This document shows positions 2,102 to 64,000 of a DNA stretch of 64,000 bases, in pieces. Where the stretch lies: NCBI GenBank assembly GCA_002269645.1, contig NIVC01000900.1, positions 1-64,000 on the forward strand, in the 5' to 3' direction. Each line of letters starts with the position of its first letter. Within the stretch, counting starts at the first letter, position 1. The stretch is from Macrostomum lignano (lineage: Eukaryota). Position numbers and translations under genes: made by a program. Under the pieces are notes generated by a model that searched no databases, had not been told where the DNA came from, and worked only from the letters and a program-made list of their open reading frames with translations.

Positions 2102-5062
2102 ATGTCAACCAGCTGTCACCATCTAGATCACAACTGCGAATGGCCAGACACGGACGAGCTGGTGGCAGCAGCCAATCGGATTCGACCCTACGTAAGCGTC
2201 ACTCCAGTCATGACGTCATCTTTATTGGACTCGATGTCCAACGGTAGGCGACTTTACTTCAAATGCGAGCATCTTCAACGTACTGGAAGTTTTAAGCTGC
2301 GAGGCGCTTTGAACGCCTTGCTGAGAATGCCTCAGGGCTATGCAGGTGTGGTGGCGCACAGCAGCGGTAACCATGGACAGGCGCTGGCCTGGGCAGCGGA
2401 CAGGCTCCGTCTGGTCTGCTGCGTTGTGGTGCCAAACGATACACCGGCGGCAAAGGTTGGCCTTTAAACATTTTTTTAAATGAATCATTTTGGACTAGCT
2501 GAGCTTCTTTTTGGCAACCCCTAAACCCCCATAGCCTAGCCTGGAGTTGTACCTGTATTCTAGTGGTTAGAGCGTCGGACTCACGACTGAAAGGTCGGGG
2601 GTTCGATTCTCGATCACACTGGAACAATTTGTGTCCTCGAACGAGACATTAAACTCTGCATTGCTTCAGTTCATAGCTGCGGCTGAGCTGTCGGTTGCAA
2701 ATCTGCCCATTATTGTATAATTTGGTACAAAAAGCAAAAAAGGCGTCGAAATATTAAAGCTCTATTATATTATGGTTTCTTAGTGTTAGTTTTGTGTAAT
2801 GAAGATGGCAGAAAACAGAAAATACAGGGTCTGTCCCACCGATTACGACGACAGATGCCGATTTACGAAACTTGTTGATTATTTGCTTTTCTCGCCATCT
2901 TAGACTAGGTTAGACCCTTCGATCCTTAATTTAGAGGAACCCATTTTTAGTCTCCCTCCCCCTTCACAACCAGATTCAGCCCATGCGCAGCTACGGCGCG
3001 GAGGTGCACTTCTGCCAGCCGAACTACTCAGATCGACGGCGGGTCTGCGACAGGCTGGCCGCCGAGCGACGACTCTATCCGGTGCCCTCGTCCGACCACT
3101 GGGACGTGATCTCTGGGCAAGCCAGTGTCGGGCTGGAGCTGATAGAACAGGTGCCAGAGCTGGATGCGGTCTTGGTACCTGTCTGTGGCGGGGGACTGGC
3201 CGCAGGTGTGGCTCTGGCGTCGGCGACGATGTCCAAAGCTGCAGAGCCTGCATCGGCCAGTGCTGCACGGTCGTCTGTTAGAGTCTACTGCGTTGAGGCA
3301 GCCGGGAAGGTTAGCAAATTTTCAGGAATTTTAGTCAGGAGACTTAATTTTCTGCAGGAACACCAAGCCATTACTGCCCATTCTGAGGCATTATACTGCC
3401 GATTCTGCCGACTCCCCTGAGCAGGCACACAAGTGCGTGGTCACGTGCGCAGTCATACGCGCAGGCACACACTCACACACGGGAGTGTACAGCGGCCCTA
3501 ACTTTATTTTTCGTTAGGCATGTACACTTCACTGCGCTTTGTGGACCCTCACGGGGCGTTAATTCTAAGGGCGTCCAAGTTAATGCTAGCTACTGCACTT
3601 AGAATCGAGCCTGGGCTGCTGACACATGAGAACGCCTCGCTAGACCACTTGACTAGGGCCCAACGGCTTCTAGAGTCATTTGGCGTTACCTTTTTCCACA
3701 AGCTCCGCTTAAGTGAAGGCCAGTGGCCACCACTGTCAGAGAGATGATGCACTAGCACTAGCTTATGAAAACAATTCAATTTTCTGGCAGTATTGTTTAG
3801 TATCTCGACGGTTTAGAGGCCTGGCGACTTGACTATTGTGTGAGAAAGTGCAGAAAAAAGGAAAAACAAAGATTTTCATCTGGCCTAATGTACTTTACAG
3901 TTAAATTTAGCTTTTAAAAAAGTCTAGAGTAAATTACGCACTCGTATGCTTTGAAATTTGATATTCTTGAGAAAGACGCCAGCATCAGAAGACTCCAGCG
4001 TCAGAAGACTCCAGCGTCAGAAGACTCCAGCGTCAGAAGACTCCAGCGTCAGAAGACTCCAGCGTCAGAAGACTCCAGCGTCAGAAGACTCCAGCGTCAG
4101 AAGACTCCAGCGTCAGAAGACTCCAGCGTCAGAAGACTCCAGCGTCAGAAGACTCCAGCGTCAGAAGACTCCAGCGTCAGAAGACTCCAGCGTCAGAAGA
4201 CTCCAGCGTCGGAAGACTCCAGCGTCAGAAGACTCCAGCGTCAGAAGACTCCAGCGTCGGAAGACACCAGCGTCAGAAGACTCCAGCGTCAGAAGACTCC
4301 AGCGTCAGAAGACTCCAGCGTCAGATGCATAAGCGTCAGCTGGCGACATGCAGTCTTGTCATTCATCTACGCCACTGACTCTTGTCCGTCTGTCGAGAAT
4401 GCTTTCAAAGTAAATGAGATGCCATTTGGTATTATTGTACTACACTGTATATCTCTTTAAATATACCTGGTATTTGAAACTTCAATTAGCAAAAAGATTT
4501 CACGCATCACTTTTTACGGAATTACTTCTCTAACAGGAGTCATGAAAATATTTTAATGACTGTATGCGTATAGTCTGGAAAAGAAAATGGGAAATGCATC
4601 TGGTACTTTTCCAACTCGGGCATCAACTTGCAGAATCTCGCGGCCAGCCTTGTCGCCGGCCAGCCGCTGAATACGTCCGACGAGTTTATTCCGACCGTTG
4701 CCGAGTCGCTTCGTCTTCGGCCAGTTGCTCCGCTCGCTCTCTCGGTGCTGCACCGTCTGGCCGAACGAAGAGTTTTCAGCGTTGACAACGCCGGTATGGC
4801 TGGCGGCGTGCGGCTGGCCGCTCGCTATCTCAAACAGACAGTGGAAGCCGCCAGCGGCGCCGCCCTGTTCGCCGCTGTACACCTGGCCGACAAGACTCTC
4901 CCTCCGGTGACTGAGTGCCAAAATATTGGCGTCGTGCTGAGTGGGGGAAATCTTGACCCGTTTTCTAAGGAGTTCTACAGATTGACTGCTGAGCTAGAGA
5001 CAGTCACGGATGGTGGCGGCGGCCCGGTGAACATTGTCGGGCCTGTGATGCTTCAGATGTGA
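2102..5062 (+). CDS. SRR: PLP-dependent serine/aspartate racemase family enzyme, 372 aa; exons 2102-2455, 2974-3309, 4634-5062
   Basis: PLP-lysine motif FKCEHLQRTGSFKLRGA, HSSGNHGQA, VISGQ, VPVCGGGL, VVLSGGNLD. Both introns are GT-AG phase 0 and join in frame. AATAAA at about 5128. Confidence 0.92.
2543..2715 (+). mobile_element. SINE family A, internally deleted copy in racemase intron 1
   Basis: TAGTGGTTAGAGCGTCGGACTCACGACTGAAAGGTCGGGGTTCGATTCTC head plus the shared 3' block GCTGCGGCTGAGCTGTCGGTTGCA. Confidence 0.75.
3360..3662 (-). mobile_element. tRNA-derived SINE, family B, in racemase intron 2
   Basis: Minus strand reads GGGCCCTAGTCAAGTGGTCTAGCG...CCCAGGCTCGATTCTAAGTGCAGT (A/B-box-like); body homologous to the complemented copy at 51688-52049. 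Confidence 0.75.
3972..4324. repeat. 16-bp minisatellite AGAAGACTCCAGCGTC, about 22 copies
   Basis: Direct reading; explains the repetitive ORFs 3951-4460 and 3958-4332. Confidence 0.95.
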
Positions 5063-43792: not shown

Positions 43793-44249
43793 ATGGCAAT
43801 GGAAATCACTGAGAATCTGCTCTGCTCGCTGATACCAAAATGCAACAATAGCATTTATAACTCGAGTTCAACGGTGACTCAAAGCTCCGCTTACTCGCCT
43901 ATGCCGAGGTCAGAATGCTTTTTCTGTCGCCTATTTTACCTGGTAGTTACTCCGCTGATAGTGCTGCTGGGCTGTATTGGCAATGCGCTCTGCATCAAAG
44001 TGTTTACCAGACGAAGGTTCCAAAACCAAAGTGCCAGCGTGTACTTTGCCTGTCTGTCCGGAGCAGACCTGCTCGTGCTAATCTTCTACGTCATTCCGGA
44101 GTGGCTGGCCAAGCAGAACTTCCTGCCGACTGCCGCTAAGTCTTGGCTGGATCTGCAGATCATGTGCCAGAGCCTGCTGTTCTTCTCCTATTCGTTTAGA
44201 ATGGTGTCGGTCTGGATGCTCGTGACGTCAACGGTGGAGCGGTACATCG
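43793..44249 (+). CDS. Class A (rhodopsin-like) peptide GPCR, coding exon 1 (TM1-TM3)
   Basis: TM1 LLGCIGNALCIKVF, TM2 SASVYFACLSGADLL, TM3 CQSLLFFSYSFRMVSVWMLVTSTVERYI; phase-1 donor G|GTAAGT at 44249/44250. Confidence 0.9.
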
Positions 44250-44284
44250 GTAAGTTGCTGGTCATGGATGGCCTTGTCTGCTTA

Positions 44285-45510
44285 TCAGCTGTCCATTGAT
44301 GTTTTATGTCAGCTATCCATTGGCGTCTTTTATCCGCTATCCATTGGCGTCTTTTATCCGCTATCCATTGGCGTCTTTTATCCGCTATCCATTGGCGTCT
44401 TTTATCCGCTATCCATTGGCGTCTTTTATCCGCTATCCATTGGCGTCTTTTATCCGCTATCCATTGGCGTCTTTTATCCGCTATCCATTGGCGTCTTTTA
44501 TCCGCTATCCATTGGCGTCTTTTATCCGCTATCCATTGGCGTCTTTTATCCGCTATCCATTGGCGTCTTTTATCCGCTATCCATTGGCGTCTTTTATCCG
44601 CTATCCATTGGCGTCTTTTATCCGCTATCCATTGGCGTCTTTTATCCGCTATCCATTGGCGTCTTTTATCCGCTATCCATTGGCGTCTTTTATCCGCTAT
44701 CCATTGGCGTCTTTTATCCGCTATCCATTGGCGTCTTTTATCCGCTATCCATTGGCGTCTTTTATCCGCTATCCATTGGCGTCTTATCAGCTATCCATTG
44801 GCGTCTTATTAGCTATCCATTGGCGTCGTATTAGCTATCCATGGGCGTCTTATCAGCTATCCATTGGCGTCTTATCAGCTATCCATTGGCGTCTTTTATC
44901 CGCTATCCATTGGCGTCTTTTATCCGCTATCCATTGGCGTCTTTTATCCGCTATCCATTGGCGTCTTTTATCCGCTATCCATTGGCGTCTTTTATCCGCT
45001 ATCCATTGGCGTCTTTTATCCGCTATCCATTGGCGTCTTTTATCCGCTATCCATTGGCGTCTTTTATCCGCTATCCATTGGCGTCTTATCAGCTATCCAT
45101 TGGCGTCTTATTAGCTATCCATTGGCGTCGTATTAGCTATCCATGGGCGTCTTATCAGCTATCCATTGGCGTCTTATCAGCTATCCATTGGCGTCTTTTA
45201 TCCGCTATCCATTGGCGTCTTTTATCCGCTATCCATTGGCGTCTTTTATCCGCTATCCATTGGCGTCTTTTATCCGCTATCCATTGGCGTCTTTTATCCG
45301 CTATCCATTGGCGTCTTTTATCCGCTATCCATTGGCGTCTTTTATCCGCTATCCATTGGCGTCTTATCAGCTATCCATTGGCGTCTTATCAGCTATCCAT
45401 AATGTCTTATATCAGCTATCCATTGGCGTCTTATCAGCTATCCATAATGTCTTATATCAGCTATCCATTGGCGTCTTATCAGCTATCCATAAATGTCTTA
45501 TCAGCTATCC
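44285..45510. repeat. 24-bp minisatellite GCTATCCATTGGCGTCTTTTATCC, GPCR intron
   Basis: Direct reading. Confidence 0.95.
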
Positions 45511-46223
45511 TTGGAAACAGGATCCTAAAGTAGCATCCTTGACGCAGTTACCTTTAGACAGTCAAGTAGTGAAACAGCATAAAGTATTTATAAACTTTAC
45601 TAAAACGAACTAAAATAAATTAATCAGCAAATAGCAAATCTTTACAATTACTCACATTCAAGTCAGTCTCACAAAAAACTTTAATTTCCCAAATGGACTT
45701 GATAATCTCGTGAGCTATTCGGCTTGGGAATTAACTAAACCAACTGCTCGTGCGCTCGAGTATGCTAGCCGTGACTGGTACACAGTCATAGCATAAACGA
45801 AGATCGAACAATCTGATGAAAGAAAGACAGGCATATGCGATGCTTCAGTCCGGCCTATCTATCCATCTGAGGCCGGGACTGACTGCTTGTGAATTTCTAA
45901 TCGTGTAGAAAATCGTTGCGTGACAACGAGATTCTCATGCCACACGGAGCACACTTAACAGATTTCGGAAAGGGATTGTTAATTTATACATTTTTTCGAG
46001 TGGGAACTGCAGATATGAAATGCAGAATCAGTCTGACTGGATAATCGAATACTCCTATAGGGTGTTCAGCCCTGGAGTAGATAAATCTAAAAATATTTCG
46101 ATTTTATCGGTTAGCATTGATTTATAAGCAACTGTCCATTGAAACTTGATTCAACATCTAAAGATGAAGCATTGGTGAAGCTTTCGATGTGTGATTTAAA
46201 TTTTTTGCAAGTGGACTTAGAAC

Positions 46224-46695
46224 AGCATCTTTGATGCAAACCCTTGATAAAGCATCCTTGATACGTGTAGGAACTATGTCATAGGAACTATATCGTAGGA
46301 ACTACGTCTTGGGAACTATGTCGTAGGAACTATGTCGTAGGAACTATGTCGTAGGAATTATGTTGTAGGAACTATGTCGCAGAAAATTTGTTGTAAGAAC
46401 TATGTCTTAGGAATTTGTGTTGTAGGAACTATGTCGTAGGAACTATGTCATAGGGAATTTGTTGTAAGAACTATGTCGTAGGAATTATGTCGTAGGGAAT
46501 TTGTTGTAGGAACTATGTCGTAGGAAATTTTGTTGTACGAACTATGTGTCGTAGGGAATTTGTTGTAGGAACTATGTCGTAGGAACTATGTCGTAGGGAA
46601 TTTGTTGTAGGAATTTTGTTGTAGGGAATTTGTTGTAGGAACTATGTCGTAGGAACTATGTCGTAGGAACTATGTCGTAGGAACTATATCGTAGG
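46224..46695. repeat. 14-bp minisatellite AGCATCCTTGATAC that switches to its complement TCGTAGGAACTATG at 46265
   Basis: Units at 46224-46264 read forward; from 46265 units are the base-by-base complement in unbroken 14-bp register. Confidence 0.9.
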
Positions 46696-47069
46696 GACCT
46701 TGTAGTGGGATTTATACGACACATTCCGAATATTTGTTCGGGGATTTGTAAAACGTCATATCGACCCTATGTAGTGACTAAGTTTAAAAAGGAGTCGTGT
46801 CTTCGACAAGTTGACAGTTTGTCTTGGAACTGCCTACCGGTGGTACCAGTCTTCAGACAAATTTTACGTCGTCTGTTGTTTTCTAGCTTCTGATAAAAAC
46901 ATGTGACCACGTAACCTAGGGGTGACCTGTCGTTTAGGGGAACTTCGAACCGAAAGTTGCGTCAGGGGTGCAGGTCCTTTGTATAAAAAAAGTTTCCTGT
47001 GAGCTGTAAACACAGGACCTTTTTCTTCGATTTGGTAGCGTTCATCCTTGTGTATTTGAACTTAAACGA

Positions 47070-48705
47070 ATTGTACGAATAGTCTCGATTTACTGTGTAC
47101 GAATAGTCTCGGTGTACTGTGTACGAATAGTCTCGGTTTACTGTGTACGAATAGTCTCGGTTTACTGTGTACGAATAGTCTCGGTTTACTGTGTACGAAA
47201 GTCTCGGTTTACTGTGTACGAATAGTCTCGGTTTACTGTGTACGAATAGTCTCGGTGTACTGTGTACGGATAGTCTAGGTGTACTGTGTACGAATAGTCA
47301 CGATTTACTGTGCACGAATAGTCTCGATTTACTGTGTACGGATAGTCTCGGTGTACTTTGTACGAATAGTCTCGGTGTACTGTGTACGGATAGTCTCGGT
47401 GTACTGTGTACGAATAGTCTCGATTTACTGTGCACGAATAGTCTCGATTTACTGTGTACGGATAGTCTCGGTGTACTGTGTACGAATAGTCTCGGTGTAC
47501 TGTGTACGAATAGTCTCGATTTACTGTGTACGGATAGTCTCGGTGTACTGTGTACGAATAGTCTCGGTGTACTGTGTACGGATAGTCTCGGTGTACTGTG
47601 TACGAATAGTCTCGGTGTACTGTGTACGAATAGTCTCGGTGTACTGTGTACGAATAGTCTCGGTGTACTGTGTACGAATAGTCTCGGTGTACTGTGTACG
47701 AATAGTCTCGATTTACTGTGTACGAATAGTCTCGGTGTACTGTGTACGGAATAGTCTCGATTTACTGTGTACGGATAGTCTCGGTTTACTGTGTACGAAT
47801 AGTCTCGGTTTACTGTGTACGAATAGTCTCGGTGTACTGTGTACGAATAGTCTCGATTTACTGTGTACGGATAGTCTCGGTTTACTGTGTACGAATAGTC
47901 TAGGTTTACTGTGTACGAATAGTCTCGGTGTACTGTGTACGAATAGTCTCGATTTACTGTGTACGAATAGTCTCGGTGTACTGTGTACGAATAGTCTCGA
48001 TTTACTGTGTACGAATAGTCTCGGTTTACTGTGTACGAATAGTCTCGGTGTTACTGTGTACGAATAGTCTCGGTTTACTGTGTACGAATAGTCTCGGTTT
48101 ACTGTGTACGAATAGTCTCGGTTTACTGTGTACGAATAGTCTCGGTGTACTGTGTACGAATAGTCTCGATTTACTGTGTACGAATAGTCTCGGTGTACTG
48201 TGTACGAATAGTCTCGGTGTACTGTGTACGAATAGTCTCGGTGTACAGTGTACTGTGTACGAATAGTCTCGGTGTACTGTGTACGAATAGTCTCGGTGTA
48301 CTGTGTACGAATAGTCTCGATTTACTGTGTACGAATAGTCTCGGTGTACTGTGTACGAATAGTCTCGATTTACTGTGTACGGATAGTCTCGGTTTACTGT
48401 GTACGAATAGTCTCGGTGTACTGTGTACGAATAGTCTCGTGTACTGTGTACGAATAGTCTCGGTTACTGTGTACGAATAGTCTCGGTTTACTGTGTACGA
48501 ATAGTCTCGGTTTACTGTGTACGAATAGTCTCGGTTTACTGTGTACGAATAGTCTCGGTGTACTGTGTACGAATAGTCTCGATTTACTGTGTACGAATAG
48601 TCTCGGTGTACTGTGTACGAATAGTCGATTTACTGTGTACGGATAGTCTCGGTTTACTGTGTACGAATAGTCTCGGTGTACTGTGTACGAATAGTCTGGG
48701 TTTAC
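47070..48705. repeat. 24-bp minisatellite TACTGTGTACGAATAGTCTCGGTG (inside the complemented block)
   Basis: Direct reading; the native unit would be ATGACACATGCTTATCAGAGCCAC. Confidence 0.95.
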
Positions 48706-49797
48706 TTTAAAACTCTCTTGATTCTCTTGATTTGTATGGTTATGAGCATCAATTGTCAGTAGTAATTGTATTACGCCGAGCTTTTGAACTGTGACGTTTA
48801 TTAAAGATAGCGGGTCTCCGAGCCTGTGTAGAACACTGAAGTTTGTAACGGACTCCGAACTTGCTTATACATTTAATATTTGCTGACCGAATTAGGGACC
48901 TTGCACTGTTTGGGTCCAGTTGATTCCCAACCAAGACAAACTGTCCTCTTTTTTGAGTTAAGTGAGGAGCAATCGAAGCTCCGAAAGAGCGCGACAATAC
49001 GTCGGAATCAATGGATGTTACGTAACTAAAGTGCGTGCTATACTCTATGTCGATCCCTATAGGTTATAGTCTTACAATATTTGAGCCGAAATCGACTCCT
49101 CTAAAGTGCGTATCTAGGCTCGGAATAGTTAAGGAAAGGTGCTGTTCTTTAAGCGACTGTTTTTGTGCCATTCTACCATTTTTCTGCCATTGAGTTAGTC
49201 GTTCAACCGATTTAAAATGAGCTACATATACGACTGTTCGATGTACCTGTTCCGTCACCACTCTCCGAGACAATCTCTGCGCTTTACGCTTAGACAGACA
49301 ATGAATAACTGACTTGGAGAAGAACGTGTCCTGAGAACATCTATCTTATCTTAGAACTGGTTAATTACGCACACCTTAAACTTCCATTGGGTATCGATCG
49401 GAATACCAAAACATCGTAGAGTTCTTATAGATGGAAAAGATCAGCAAACTGAGAAGAAAGCTAAGTTTCGATGTTTCGAAACAAGTAAAATTCTTAAAAG
49501 ACGAAGCTGCTACAGTTTTTGACCTAAATCATAAGATGTTTAGACTTTAAATTTTCGAAAATCCTGGGTGTCAGTGTACTACCAACAAATGGCAAGTTAT
49601 CTAATAGGGAATCTTGATTATCATAAATTAGGATAAGCTCAAAACAGTAAATTTCAAGACAACACCGTCCTAATGTCGAACGGGCTGAAGCGATTGCATC
49701 CAAAAGAAATGCTAAAAGCACGTCTTTTACGTCTCTAACGGTTACCAACTTTTAACTAGTTCGAGCCGAGACGATTGGCGTAAATTAGCGGGGAGTC

Positions 49798-50708
49798 CGC
49801 AGGCAGTGGGCTACGAAGCCGCGGCCTAGACATGTTTCGCGTCGCGGGCGGCGTAGTAGAAGTAGAACCAGTGGTTGTCGATGCGGGAGACGGATACCTT
49901 CGGCAAATACGTGCAGTGGGTCGCAAACTTGCGGTTGCAGTGGCGGACGAACGGCGCAGGGCCCCGGTTGCAACTCGACAAGCACGACCTGTGTCGGATA
50001 CGACGGGACGACTGGCAGTAGGGCAGGCGATAGTATAAGCAGAAGTTGCGCGACTAGCGAGCAGTGAACGACTAACAGGCGGCAAGAGCTAGCACGTGGT
50101 TAGTGCTGCAACAGCCCGTGGTCAAGCGGACAGACGATGACCAGCACAGCAGGTGAAAAGACGAGGACTGAACCGGGATGATAGACTAGACCTAACAGTC
50201 GAAACACCACTTCAAAGCGTAGGCGTGGCCGGACTGGCTGTCGATGGACTGTTAGCTGCCTCCACTGCCCTAATTCGTCCCGGTTATGCCGTCGCGGTAC
50301 TGGTAGTGCTTCTGGTAGATGATGGATTGAATGTCGCAGTTGAAGAAAGAGATAAGGATGCGATCGTGGATGAAGGCGTTCCTCTACTTCGCTTACAAGT
50401 GGCACTTCTACTTCGCCCTGTTCCGAGCGGCTAAGATAGTCGTACCGTCAGTCCTCCCGGGCTGCCTCGCCAAGTTGAAGTGGTACTCGGCCGGTTCGTC
50501 GCCGCCTAGGTGGATACGGCCCGACGAGCTGGCGATGTTCTTCTAGTGGTAGGCAGCCTACGGCTGGTACGCGTTCGGGTGGCTCAGCCGATAGTGGCCG
50601 CCGCCGCAGCCACCGCAGTCGCCGCAGTCGCAGAGGCCAGGGAGTAGCAGCAGCGTCCACCACCGTCGGGTCTACGTGTTGACGGCTCGCTAACTTCTTC
50701 GCTTAACT
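49798..50708. CDS. GPCR coding exon 2 (TM4-TM7 and tail), legible only in the non-reversed complement of the + strand; full receptor 455 aa
   Basis: Complement reads CCCTCAG|GC GTC CGT CAC CCG..., completing ERYI-G-VRHPMLRRRICTKRSARRIIFILVTNSYALCLWKPF...LDTAYAALLTVIPSAIIFVFNALIARHL...FACLLLVVSSTFLLLTWPYYL...YYLTYSVNFFLYSYASTYFRKEMKRMF...IEEAN*; 911 nt with no internal stop, TGA at 50706-50708, AATAAA just after. Confidence 0.93.
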
Positions 50709-51687
50709 TAGTTATTATTTAGTTTATTAACGCCTTTTAAAAAACTAAGCCCACTCGGTAAGCCAAAAGTAGTGCGTCTAACTCAGTTCAAATTTAATTG
50801 TTTTAGAAAAGGCAGTAATTGCTTAATCAACTTGATAGCTCAATAAAACACAAAAACAAAGATATAACTGCTCACAAAATGGTCAAATAAACTAACGAGA
50901 ATGTAAAATTTTGTAGGACTCTCAACATTTGAACAAACATACATCAACCCTCTGAGCTTGAACAAATATAAAGTTTAGAAACGTCGGTGTATAGCGCTAA
51001 TTCTAGCTTTCGACGTAACCTTGAAGCTAACAAGAAACATTGGTTTGTGTGTTATTTTAGACTTCAATTAGCGCATATAAATGGTATAAATGAAGATATC
51101 ATCGTGAGACTAAGCCGATAATTGCAATAACAATTAACAATATTATATCGTGAACAAAATGATTAAAACCGTGAAGATTGTTGGGACAAATAGAACGCAT
51201 AAACGTGGACAATTTTTCGTCTCACGTGGTGGTGACTCTAATATTAACTCAGTTCCAATATGAACAAAACTTAACTGGCGTTGAGATAAATTTTTCACGT
51301 ATAACGGTGCGCAACGGCAAAAGATTCTTTTACATGTCTTAAAAAGGAGGTTGCTTGAAATGGCGAATACAAAACTAGACTTACATGCACATGACTTAAT
51401 ACGTGTTCAAAAGCTAAAAAAAGACGTGTAAAAACAAATACAACTTCTCATTAAAAAAGAACAAAAGAAAGGTGTCCGTGTATCGCAGCGATAACAAAAT
51501 TACACTTCAAGGGGTACAGTGTCGCTGCAGGTCATGCGTTCATGTTAATGTGAACTTACGTGGGGCAATAATCTACACCGTGAACACACGTCGCAGAAAA
51601 ACGTTGTTCAAAGTTAATATTTAATAATGATATTATTATTTGAATTGACGTTTGACGTGATATTTACAACCTTTCCAAGTAACCATT

Positions 51688-52049
51688 CCCCCCGGCATCG
51701 GGTCGCCAGATCGCGTCCGAGACCACAAGGTCGCTGGGTCCGAGCTAAGGTTCACGTCAGTGTAATTAAACCCCGACTTAACCTTAGAGACGAACCGAGA
51801 CAAGCACGTTAATTGCCGGAACTCTCGGTTGGGGGTTCCGCGTCACTTCACATGTACGGATTGCTATTTATTTCAATCCCGGCGACATGTGAGGAAACAC
51901 TCACACATGGACGCATGCATAGGAACGCGAACATACGGACGAGTCCCCTCAGCCGCCTTACCCGTCATTACGAGAGCGGCCAACACACGGTTACAGCGAA
52001 TTTCACGCGGTCCCACGTGTGTTGGGGGACGAAGATTATTTTTTTTATT
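51688..52049. mobile_element. SINE family B, full length with 15-bp TSDs, legible only in the non-reversed complement
   Basis: Complement reads GGGGGGCCGTAGCCCAGCGGTCTAGCG...GGCTCGATTCC...CTAATAAAAAAAATAAA; direct repeat TTTCCAAGTAACCAT at 51672-51686 and 52050-52064. Confidence 0.85.
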
Positions 52050-54489
52050 TTTCCAAGTAACCATGGTGACTTATTCATTAAATACATAGTCTCAACGAGT
52101 CGCAATGCTTTATAACCGATCTCACCCCCCCACACGCTAAGTGTGAACCGGGTTCTGTGTACATGTACGGACTGGATGGTTAGTTATTGTTAACGGTTCC
52201 GACTCGACGTTATTATAGTGCCGTCGTGTCGTTTAGGTACCTCCGTGCTGTTATCGAATATGTTATCTTTCTTAATGATGATGTCGATGATCGTACGAAT
52301 CTGCAACGAAAGTACGTTTCTGTTTTTTCGGTCGTCGTATGTGTACATCCGTGTCGCCCGGTGTGGGACCCACTTCGTAAATATATTAAGACTCTTCTAC
52401 TTTGTGTGAACTGCTCACTGCTCAATACGAGAGTCAGCGCATGCAGAGCGCTAACAGGTAGGTTGGCTGCTCATTCGCGTGGAACGGCCACGCAGATGGG
52501 AATGAGTGAGTTCTGCCTCACTCGCTCAAGCAGTTACTCTCTCGTTCCTATAATTCTCCCCATTTTCCGACATGCGGCCCTCCCCATTCCTGACGAATGC
52601 TTTTTGTTGCAGAAATTCTCTCTACAGTTTTTGTTAAAAAGCGATTTTCAAAAAAAATCACCTCAGGTAGAATTTCAAGGATGCACATTTCTTTTTTGTA
52701 AAAAATTCTATCTCATATTTTTGGTCATTCGATAATAAAAAAGTGTGGCGGACCTTGTCTGTCTTCCAAATGATCCCTACAGTATAATGGAAGCAACTCG
52801 CCCCCCTCGAGTGGATCTTCAGCTGCGGTACAAAAAAAGACATTGGCTGGCGCGAGATGCGGTGAGTAGGAAGGAACTTTTCAATAAAATAACCGACATA
52901 TGCGAAATTGAATTCATTAGAGAAAGAAGAAAAAATGTGCGCCGCTTTGAAATGACAAATTCAAATTTTAAATTAGCTACTTGAAATTTAAGTATTTTAA
53001 ATAAATTTGCTTTGTTATACTTTGTACGCCAGTCGTGTAGCACTGAGGGCTCATCATGATATACACCCAGTGCTGTTACAAAATTTACATATAATTATAG
53101 AGTATTTCTCTTTATTTCATAGTGTTTGATAAGCAAAAATTTATTTGCCATCCAAAACTAATAAATATAGAAAATTAAAAACCCAATACGGATAATATAA
53201 ATTTAATAACGATTCATTCAAAAGAATCAAATCAGTGATACGCGATCTGGTTTCCGCTGCCAAATGTTTAAAACAAACAGTTTAAAAAAATAAATAAGTA
53301 ATTTCCTTACGATTTTAACATTTTAAGGATATTTTTGAACACAAAGTGATTAATATCTAACCGTATAGCTGCACATTTAATGTAACTGTATATAATAACA
53401 GTATATTTCTATTCATGTTGTCGGATAATATCTGTGCGCCGATAGCTACAGCAATAATTCAGGATCCAATGCCAGAATAAAACTAAAAACACAAAAAACA
53501 CAGACTTGTAACAGAAACAAATAAATAATTAACTAAAAACTGTCCTAATTTCGTAAGACAATTCTCTTAACGTTAATTTTAGCCGCATATAACACGGGCT
53601 GATTTTGGCCAAACGTGCAAAATAACTGAGGAAATCAGTCACTTTGAACTAGCAATATATTGCTATCAATATTATTCAAACCATTAGGTTAATTTTTGTT
53701 TAATACAAACGTCACTCTTGACATAACTAAAAAGTTATCGAATCAGTTTTAAATTCTGGTCCAAGACTTTCCAATTCAAACAATCACACTTTTTAATATT
53801 GCTCATTGGTTTTAAAAATCGCATTCCAAGTGCAAGAAATCAACCTCTATCCATGATTAAAGAGTAATTATTCTCACCTATTCCGAACGCACTGGCCAAT
53901 ACAAAAAATCCTATTATCTATGCACAAATAATAGTTTAAGAAAGCCAAATAAAATAAAACTGCGGGGGCTTTTAACACAAATATTTGTTGTAACGAAGAC
54001 ATGGACTAAAACGTTGATTAAATCTTGTACGTCTACAAGTTAATAAAGATTAAAGGAAGGTATCTGGTATACGAGTGAACTTCGACCGTAGTCTGTACGA
54101 AATGCACAATAAATAATATATCGGTAAACGAGTGCAACACCAAAACTGAACAAGGGAATACAGAGAAGCATGAGGTTATGATGGAGTTGTTTTGAAGTTA
54201 TTCAGAAAGATTTGTTAGCTAAATATTCGCGGCAAATATCATGCATAACACCATGAAATTCAGCTCGCAATTCAAGACATTAATAAATATTGGTATTAAC
54301 AACAGATCGAACTTGGCCGATGTCCAAACACGTTAAAACAGAGCGTTTTTTCAGGGCACCTCATACCTACAGGCCTATTAAATAGGTAAACACCAGTGCA
54401 GCGAAACAGCGAAAATAAATTTATTGCAAAAATTGTACATGAATTGCTGTCAATATAAGTTTCTTAACTCCAATGCACACAATGCACAA

Positions 54490-56636: not shown

Positions 56637-63753
<7,117 letters not shown>

Positions 63754-64000
63754 CTGTGGGAGGTTAATAATTTACTTTTATTTATTTTTTTATTTTTATT
63801 TACTCAATAGTTCGCTTTTAAAACTGACAAAATACGCCAGTAAAAATTCTAAGAATCCCCCTCAAAAAGTAAAAAAAATCCGCCTGACTCTAAAAGTACA
63901 AAATCAGCTCTACTCTAAAAGTACAAAAATCCGACCCCTCAGAACATCAAAGAAGACCCGCCCCTCAGAACTGCGAAAACCCAACACTCAGAACTGCAAA

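Follow-up and report, generated by a model that had tools for sequence, protein, structure and literature searches.

A 6.1-kb interval of a Macrostomum lignano contig, very probably altered by an incomplete strand flip in silico, hides the second half of a receptor gene

A receptor gene that continues only in the complement of the given sequence

The window analysed here, a stretch of 64,000 nucleotides from a contig of Macrostomum lignano, contains the first exon of a G protein-coupled receptor (GPCR) gene that reads normally on the + strand. The first-pass annotation had proposed that this exon stops after the third transmembrane segment (TM3), that no real frame continues it, and that the missing half of the gene appears when the downstream sequence is complemented without being reversed. 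Features that can be read only in this way are given no strand (.) below.

43793..44249, + strand: GPCR exon 1, written normally, starting at the ATG and ending with the first base of codon 153; it encodes the N-terminus and TM1-TM3 up to the ERY motif
44250..49797, + strand: intron 1, rich in minisatellites, 5,548 nt, of which the first 2,015 nt are normal and the remainder lies within the complement-only block
49798..50708, strand (.): GPCR exon 2, 911 nt including the TGA, TM4-TM7 and C-terminal tail, read as the unreversed complement
50715..50720, strand (.): AATAAA poly(A) signal, complement-only reading, 7 nt past the stop codon

Every element of this proposal was recovered in our analysis. 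Exon 1 ends with ...GAG CGG TAC ATC G/GTAAGT, placing the donor at 44249/44250, and a tblastn search of the as-given sequence with the Capitella teleta protein CAPTEDRAFT_115578 (P0001) returned exon 1 only (43928-44251, E = 1.7e-24). The same query, searched against the complement-only version, gave a match over residues 122-333 at 49806-50402 (E = 5e-23). The complement-only reading supplies a CAG acceptor in matching phase (cccctcag/GC, 49797/49798) and a stop-free exon of 911 nt; together the two exons comprise 457 + 911 = 1368 nt, corresponding to 455 aa plus a TGA at 50706-50708. The joined product reads ERYIG-VRHPMLRRRICTKRSARRII ... YSVNFFLY, as had been claimed. The annotation had staked its reading on a GPCR profile match of the complement translation, and the joined protein scored 66.4 bits on Pfam 7tm_1 (E = 3.5e-18), with a match spanning residues 63-289. 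Exon 1 alone reached 30.4 bits on this profile (PF00001), whose curated cut-off is 30.5 bits.

Relatives were picked by an HMMER search with exon 1 alone and were then aligned to exon 2 in all readings. A total of 69 relatives matched the complement-only frame right after their own exon-1 match, with a best E value of 8e-35, while none matched any of the other 11 readings of 49798-50705 used as controls, which comprised the as-given, reverse-complement and reverse-only frames. The Capitella GPCR aligned unbroken over residues 46-354, across the exon junction (BLASTP, 3e-57), and the Capitella orthologue is a single colinear exon. The M. lignano protein P0178 matched TM5-TM7 at 2e-52; the word-indexed protein search was run without the low-complexity tail of the receptor. 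In addition, a Logan contig of a related worm carries an exon-1 ORF that is 83% identical and has the same donor position. A metagenome scan for a single locus carrying both receptor halves found none.

The corrected protein shares the TM7 sequence YSVNFFLY with CAPTEDRAFT_115578, and TM3 ends in ERY, as in class-A peptide-type GPCRs. Among solved receptors, its best matches in the PDB were NMBR (2.9e-10) and TRHR (6e-09). It differs from class-A peptide-type GPCRs in a long TM6-TM7 loop and a low-complexity Gly/Ser/Val tail, its TM7 has the motif NFFLY where NPxxY is canonical, and its nearest named protein is just 35% identical. Hydropathy analysis gave six clear peaks; TM7 fell under the crude threshold, although it is aligned to the Capitella TM7. 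As predicted from sequence, the corrected gene is a two-exon gene encoding an intact rhodopsin-class receptor of 455 aa, which looks like a peptide receptor.

One alternative is that the open frame and its resemblance to a GPCR arose by coincidence and that the receptor is truly a three-TM fragment or a pseudogene. Long spurious open frames are indeed numerous in repeat-rich windows, whichever of the four readings is taken. However, the frame in question is non-repetitive, the chance of 302 open codons at the given base composition is approximately 1e-4 per position, and the relatives match it exactly at their TM4-TM7 halves with no match in the controls. Moreover, three unrelated kinds of evidence described below, namely k-mers, the register of a minisatellite and a SINE-like copy, delimit the same block. 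On these sequence comparisons, the homology E values exclude coincidence as the source of the open frame. Coincidence was thus refuted by the tblastn results, the frame matches of the relatives and the k-mer segmentation, and we regard its probability as practically zero.

Extent and sequence statistics of the block

46265..52399, strand (.): complement-only block of ~6,135 nt; left edge accurate to +/-3 nt, right edge at about 52390-52412

This block is legible on neither real strand and becomes ordinary sequence again when complemented in place. Its extent was evaluated with an orientation score, defined as the log-odds of each k-mer versus its own complement, strand-symmetrised, for k = 3-5, followed by a maximal-segment search. 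Across the 64-kb window, the maximal reversed-orientation segment was 46262-52400, with 507 nats versus 41 for the next best, so that this independent segmentation agrees with the limits 46265-52400 that had been proposed from reading the sequence. The TG+CA/GT+AC ratio was 0.64 in the block versus 1.33 outside, and the CG/GC ratio was 2.08 versus 0.59. The swap of TG/GT and CG/GC ratios by which the annotation expected such sequence to be recognisable was therefore present when the window was scanned, and the TA/AT ratio was inverted too (1.49 versus 0.83). Negative k-mer orientation was found in 36 of the 39 300-bp windows in the block and in 41 of the 350 outside. No further complement-only or reverse-only block was detected in the window, where the next-best segments reached at most 41 nats and lay within repeats.

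The sequence contains no Ns. The left join, 46264/46265, is seamless, without lost or duplicated bases; the right edge lies in unremarkable unique sequence, with nothing recognisable spanning it, and the block edges match no gene or repeat boundary. Within the block, the order of features (intron, exon 2, poly(A) signal) is preserved from left to right. Besides exon 2, a search of the corrected block for additional hidden genes revealed repeat-derived open frames only.

Two sharp breakpoints, one of them within intron 1, would also be produced by an ordinary chromosomal inversion that interrupts the gene, and a two-breakpoint block disrupting a gene is indeed the likeness between the two. The strands of DNA are antiparallel, and a real inversion gives a reverse complement. 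An inversion therefore differs from what lies here: it flips the order of features, which is kept in the block; the reverse-complement frames of 49798-50705 match none of the GPCR relatives; and the block taken as reverse complement has no match elsewhere in the window. In addition, the k-mer statistics are symmetric under reverse complementation and would be left unchanged by an inversion, but in the block they are inverted. Refuted by the frames, the BLAST results and the k-mer statistics, an inversion retains essentially no probability.

Repeats as internal markers of orientation

The window contains the following repeats, outside the block and within it.

44282-45490: 24-nt minisatellite within intron 1, written normally (TRF)
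46222..46264, + strand: 14-nt minisatellite, AGCATCCTTGATAC; its first three units, in normal orientation, directly left of the block
46265..46695, strand (.): further units of the 14-nt minisatellite, here as complement, GTAGGAACTATGTC
47072..48706, strand (.): 24-nt minisatellite in the block, 68 copies (TRF)
3394..3661, - strand: second SINE-like copy, written normally, an internal reference exposing the transformation of the block
51672..51686, strand (.): left target-site duplication, AAAGGTTCATTGGTA once corrected
51687..52049, strand (.): SINE-like interspersed repeat, written as complement; when corrected, a 5' head and a 3' A-rich tail
52050..52064, strand (.): right target-site duplication, the identical 15-mer directly after the A-rich tail

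The 14-nt minisatellite crosses the left edge. On the corrected sequence, TRF reported one 14-nt array at 46222-46695, whereas the as-given array begins only at 46267, and the 14-nt register is kept across 46264/46265 only after correction. The strongest reversed k-mer signal came from the 24-nt minisatellite at 47072-48706 (bins 47 and 48: -160 and -128).

The SINE-like repeat provided a comparison with sequence far outside the block. The complement of 51691-51968 matched 3661-3394 with 72% identity over 296 bp (E = 6e-38), while a BLAST search of the as-given block against the rest of the window on both strands matched nothing. In the corrected sequence, the head of the repeat, its A-rich tail and its perfect 15-bp target-site duplication are arranged as they should be. 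Motifs resembling box A and box B in its head are a by-eye impression only; ARAGORN called no tRNA in the block in either reading, and no similarity was found between the repeat and the tRNA-like Rfam hit at 57374-57443. Taken over the whole block, the exon, acceptor, stop and poly(A) signal were transformed together with the minisatellites, the SINE-like repeat and the target-site duplication that flanks it, and no kind of feature was damaged.

An orientation fault or a physical event

Five independent kinds of evidence concur: the joined exon, the matches of the relatives, the orientation score, the minisatellite register and the SINE-like copy. Everything internal to the sequence fits one contiguous interval having been transformed in silico, which upholds the inference in the first-pass annotation of an orientation fault. 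We are almost certain that the block is a computational fault, the incomplete strand flip of one interval in ordinary nuclear genome sequence. Two operations could have produced it. In one, a minus-strand copy of 46265-52399 would have been reversed but not complemented; in the other, the interval would have been complemented in place but not reversed. Both would yield the identical string, and the preserved left-to-right order is the outcome expected of either. The true DNA would then be the window with 46265-52399 complemented base for base. Since the left join is seamless and Ns are absent, the interval was probably no scaffold join but a patch, a long-read fill or a stretch cut from sequence that was already contiguous. 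Because 302 open codons and intact signals show no decay, the change must have been instantaneous on the evolutionary scale.

Strand-handling errors of this kind have precedents in the databases: GenBank holds records with exactly the A<->T + C<->G transformation, from many laboratories (PMC4942731). The block is exactly the string that such operations produce, but what is affected here is an internal interval of 6.1 kb, embedded without a seam in long contiguous sequence, and not an entire submitted record or read. Literature phrase searches brought up no report in which an assembler or scaffolder had written complement-only sequence in error. Nor are we aware of documentation that any mainstream assembler, polisher or scaffolder outputs such sequence. 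The published M. lignano pipeline consisted of Canu, Pilon and SSPACE, with no such known fault.

The opposing view is that the block is physically real and arose by germ-line copying in parallel orientation or by an A<->T + C<->G exchange, as proposed for 'swinger DNA' (Seligmann). The transformation follows exactly this swinger rule, the same bijective exchange, and the switches between regular and transformed sequence are abrupt at both ends, as in chimeric swinger sequences (PMC4942731). Another description of this rule is opposite-strand sequence inverted 3'-to-5'. According to the same paper, the biological interpretation of such GenBank records is held by its author alone (PMC4942731). 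The block does match ordinary sequence after the exchange, but such a match has by itself no power to tell biology from a handling error. The swinger proposal posits an unusual state of the polymerase, and the sequences it deals with are mostly mitochondrial or rRNA sequences, from about one hundred to a few hundred nucleotides long. The present case differs in that a nuclear interval with an intron, an exon, minisatellites and a retroposon was transformed whole, and the transformation of such a mixture of features points to an operation on text, not on molecules.

To our knowledge, swinger DNA has no accepted biochemical support. All polymerases and recombinases known to us yield reverse complements, and we know of none that makes complement-only DNA or would be capable of doing so, given antiparallel strands and templated 5'->3' synthesis. 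Furthermore, the conserved receptor gene would have been wrecked by a real event. Since its exon and signals and the 15-bp duplication are intact, such an event would need to be extremely recent and fixed in the germ line. The exclusion of a physical origin rests on this prior knowledge, and we consider a real block extremely improbable.

Where the fault may have arisen

Under the preferred explanation, an incomplete strand flip in silico, the fault could have arisen in the assembly pipeline, in the deposited record or in handling at any later point until this window was prepared; two origins were weighed. First, it may have occurred inside the genome project and be carried by the public assembly, where, for example, a custom or buggy step could have reversed a long-read gap fill, patch or contig without complementing it; we assign this origin about an even chance. 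The left edge lies within a minisatellite, a typical spot for contig ends and gap filling, and the block length of ~6.1 kb is within the range of long-read fills. Macrostomum genomes, with approximately 15% tandem repeats, are hard to assemble. Protein collections contain no annotated full-length protein for this gene, as expected for a broken locus, which an unannotated genome would fit too. However, the right edge falls in unremarkable unique sequence, and a tool with such a fault is undocumented in the literature searched.

Second, the public assembly may be correct and the interval may have been altered later, in downstream file handling or because a control was planted deliberately in the data set that this window was cut from, a possibility to which we give slightly under an even chance. 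The left join shows no seam at all, its register is kept, Ns are absent and not a base was lost or duplicated there; the edges are unrelated to gene or repeat boundaries, and the block is the only one in 64 kb. These features fit an operation on finished sequence between two arbitrary coordinates. Nevertheless, nothing in the sequence separates such an alteration from a gap fill, and one block per 64 kb says little about the genome-wide rate.

Implications for the receptor gene and for the assembly

The block is of consequence for quality control. Annotation of the sequence as written would yield a false three-TM receptor fragment and would miss exon 2, the SINE-like repeat and two minisatellites. 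Read mapping and alignment, too, will leave a 6-kb hole at the block that nothing explains. If the fault lies in the public assembly, other intervals or loci may be affected. The k-mer orientation test finds such blocks without external data, with a more than tenfold separation in this window. As this case shows, 'swinger-like' database sequences can originate as embedded chimeras, which bears on claims of a biological origin for these. Were the block real after all, it would be the first case of nuclear, kilobase-scale 'swinger' or parallel-strand synthesis. Most likely, its biological weight is nil, and the receptor gene of M. lignano is ordinary and intact once the text has been corrected.

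Receptor gene structure

The window contains the first exon of a rhodopsin-family receptor, which stops just past the ERY motif of TM3. We found no real frame that extends it, and a tblastn search of the as-written window with the Capitella teleta GPCR CAPTEDRAFT_115578 matched exon 1 only (E 1.7e-24). When the sequence was complemented without being reversed, residues 122-333 of the same protein matched positions 49806-50402 (tblastn, E 5e-23), and this reading also presented an acceptor (cccctcag followed by GC, at the 49797/49798 boundary) whose phase matches the exon 1 donor, and an AATAAA 7 nt beyond the TGA. The two exons are as follows:

43793 (ATG)-44249, plus strand: GPCR exon 1, from translation, ending ...ERYI G and then GTAAGT
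49798-50708, complement-only, read left to right: GPCR exon 2, 911 nt, TGA at 50706-50708

Exon 1 (457 nt) and exon 2 together make 455 codons and a stop. The Pfam 7tm_1 profile gave 66.4 bits for the joined protein versus 30.4 for exon 1 alone, and the alignment with the Capitella protein runs unbroken over residues 46-354, across the junction and through TM7, where both proteins carry YSVNFFLY. The Capitella orthologue is one colinear exon. The first-pass annotation had thus correctly described an exon 1 ending after TM3 that no real frame continues, a phase-matched acceptor and 911-nt exon in the unreversed complement supplying TM4-TM7, and the TGA and AATAAA; the complement translation that it proposed to check for stops and a GPCR profile has 302 open codons and the 7tm_1 match.

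Among solved structures, those of the neuromedin-B and TRH receptors come closest to the joined protein (E about 1e-9 to 1e-10), and the receptor is an unremarkable new class-A, peptide-receptor-like GPCR. In place of the canonical NPxxY of TM7, the joined protein has NFFLY; its loop between TM6 and TM7 is long, and its tail is rich in Gly, Ser and Val.

Homologue control on exon 2

Exon 1 only was used to query 1.84 billion representative proteins, and the best 150 matches were compared with 12 readings of 49798-50705 (three frames each of the as-written, reverse-complement, complement-only and reverse-only text). Among these 150 proteins, 69 matched one complement-only frame (best E 8e-35), and for every one of the 69 the exon 2 alignment begins directly past the part of the protein aligned to exon 1. 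The other 11 readings matched none of the 150.

The best match to exon 2 comes from M. lignano, a 235-aa UniRef protein that is its nearest Macrostomum relative. A 39-residue gap in the alignment shows that this protein has no counterpart to the TM6-TM7 loop and the beginning of TM7; a wrongly annotated intron or a genuine difference between paralogues may account for the gap. A read-derived Logan contig of run SRR31628394, from a related worm, carries the exon-1 orthologue at 441-908 (83% identical, same phase-1 donor position). Since the ORF there continues two codons into the intron, the gene caller made a 155-aa 'protein' of it, and exon-sized calls of this kind fill protein collections as seemingly truncated receptors. 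A metagenome scan for a locus with both receptor halves found none.

Limits of the block

In strand-symmetric DNA, complement-only text has mirrored k-mer statistics. An orientation score that compares each k-mer with its complement, trained outside the region, fell below zero in kb bins 46-52 and stayed above it in nearly all the rest of the window. Its change-points lie at 46260 and 52400, and the maximal negative segment, 46262-52400, reaches 507 nats, while the next best in the window reaches 41, in close agreement with the previously proposed block of 46265-52400. Within the block 36 of 39 300-bp windows were negative and the remaining three near zero. The swap of TG/GT and CG/GC ratios suggested as a diagnostic was likewise seen within the window: TG+CA/GT+AC is 0.64 in the block versus 1.33 outside, CG/GC 2.08 versus 0.59 and TA/AT 1.49 versus 0.83. 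The left edge has an uncertainty of about +/-3 nt; the right one lies within about 52390-52412, with no recognisable feature across it. A true inversion is excluded, since the reverse-complement frames of 49798-50705 have no GPCR match and the k-mer statistics are mirrored.

Repeats within the block and around it

A 14-nt minisatellite, AGCATCCTTGATAC, begins at 46222 and from 46265 on continues as its complement, GTAGGAACTATGTC; only in the corrected sequence, with the block complemented in place, did TRF report one array, 46222-46695, with the 14-nt register unbroken. When the as-written block was compared by BLAST with the remainder of the window, neither strand gave a match, and the complemented block matched 3661-3394 (72% over 296 bp, E 6e-38). 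The repeat behind this match is, after correction, bounded by a perfect 15-bp target-site duplication:

51687-52049, in the block: SINE-like repeat with, after correction, head, body and A-rich tail

Long minisatellite arrays are unusually dense in the window. They occupy 44282-45490 in intron 1 (a 24-mer, 51.6 copies) and many other places (for example 13.3-14.4, 17.6-18.6, 22.3-25.4, 27.7-28.9, 33.8-35.9, 41.1-42.2, 54.4-54.9 and 58.4-59.3 kb), consistent with the 15% of simple and tandem repeats in the M. lignano genome (PMC5730564). Owing to these arrays, every reading contains spurious open frames amounting to hundreds of codons, and GC/AT skew is locally strong.

Other features were found to the right of the block:

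56637-63763, minus strand: multi-exon FN3 gene whose product has several fibronectin type III domains and, at its C-terminus, a transmembrane segment
62205-62303, minus strand: U6atac minor-spliceosomal snRNA gene (Rfam RF00619, 48.6 bits versus a cut-off of 33, full length)
57374-57443, minus strand: tRNA-like Rfam match (37.1 bits)

The exon ORFs of the FN3 gene end at about 63736, 61649, 60565 and 57008; its best matches are M. lignano proteins (83% and 48% identity), and (CTGT)n-like and further microsatellite arrays lie in its introns. The U6atac gene sits between its exons. Taken with the M. lignano match of exon 2 and the many minisatellites, these matches make the window look like nuclear DNA from a Macrostomum flatworm or a near relative. 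ARAGORN called no tRNA at the tRNA-like match, which is followed by non-tRNA sequence and is unrelated to the SINE-like repeat of the block; it is perhaps a degenerate tRNA, or else the head of some other tRNA-derived repeat.

Origin of the block

Complement-only text is equivalent to reverse-only text of the opposite strand. Because the features of the block keep their natural order from left to right (intron, exon 2, poly(A) signal, SINE-like repeat), either a minus-strand copy of the interval would have been reversed without complementing, or the interval would have been complemented in place. All feature classes were transformed together and none has decayed, as the 302 open codons, intact signals and perfect target-site duplication illustrate; no Ns were found, and the left join gained or lost zero bases. 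These facts speak for a manipulation of text and support the orientation fault in assembly, gap filling or file handling proposed earlier. We know of no polymerase or recombinase that gives a complement-only product, because DNA strands are antiparallel. The block is almost certainly a text artefact and not a biological feature, and that it is physical DNA seems to us extremely improbable.

The fault could have arisen while the genome project was filling gaps or patching, and the position of the left edge within a minisatellite is slightly in favour of a gap fill or contig end. Roughly equal in likelihood is later file handling, in which an arbitrary coordinate interval was transformed; the perfectly seamless left join and featureless right edge fit this equally well. 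The deposited record is a third possible step.

The exchange seen in the block, A<->T + C<->G, is exactly one of Seligmann's 'swinger' rules (PMC4942731). According to his own paper, this is the sole rule under which swinger DNA is known to date, the GenBank records concerned come from many laboratories, and Seligmann alone reads them in this way (PMC4942731). A strand-handling error is the simpler reading, both of those records and of the block. The block is of low biological interest and of real practical value for assembly quality control.
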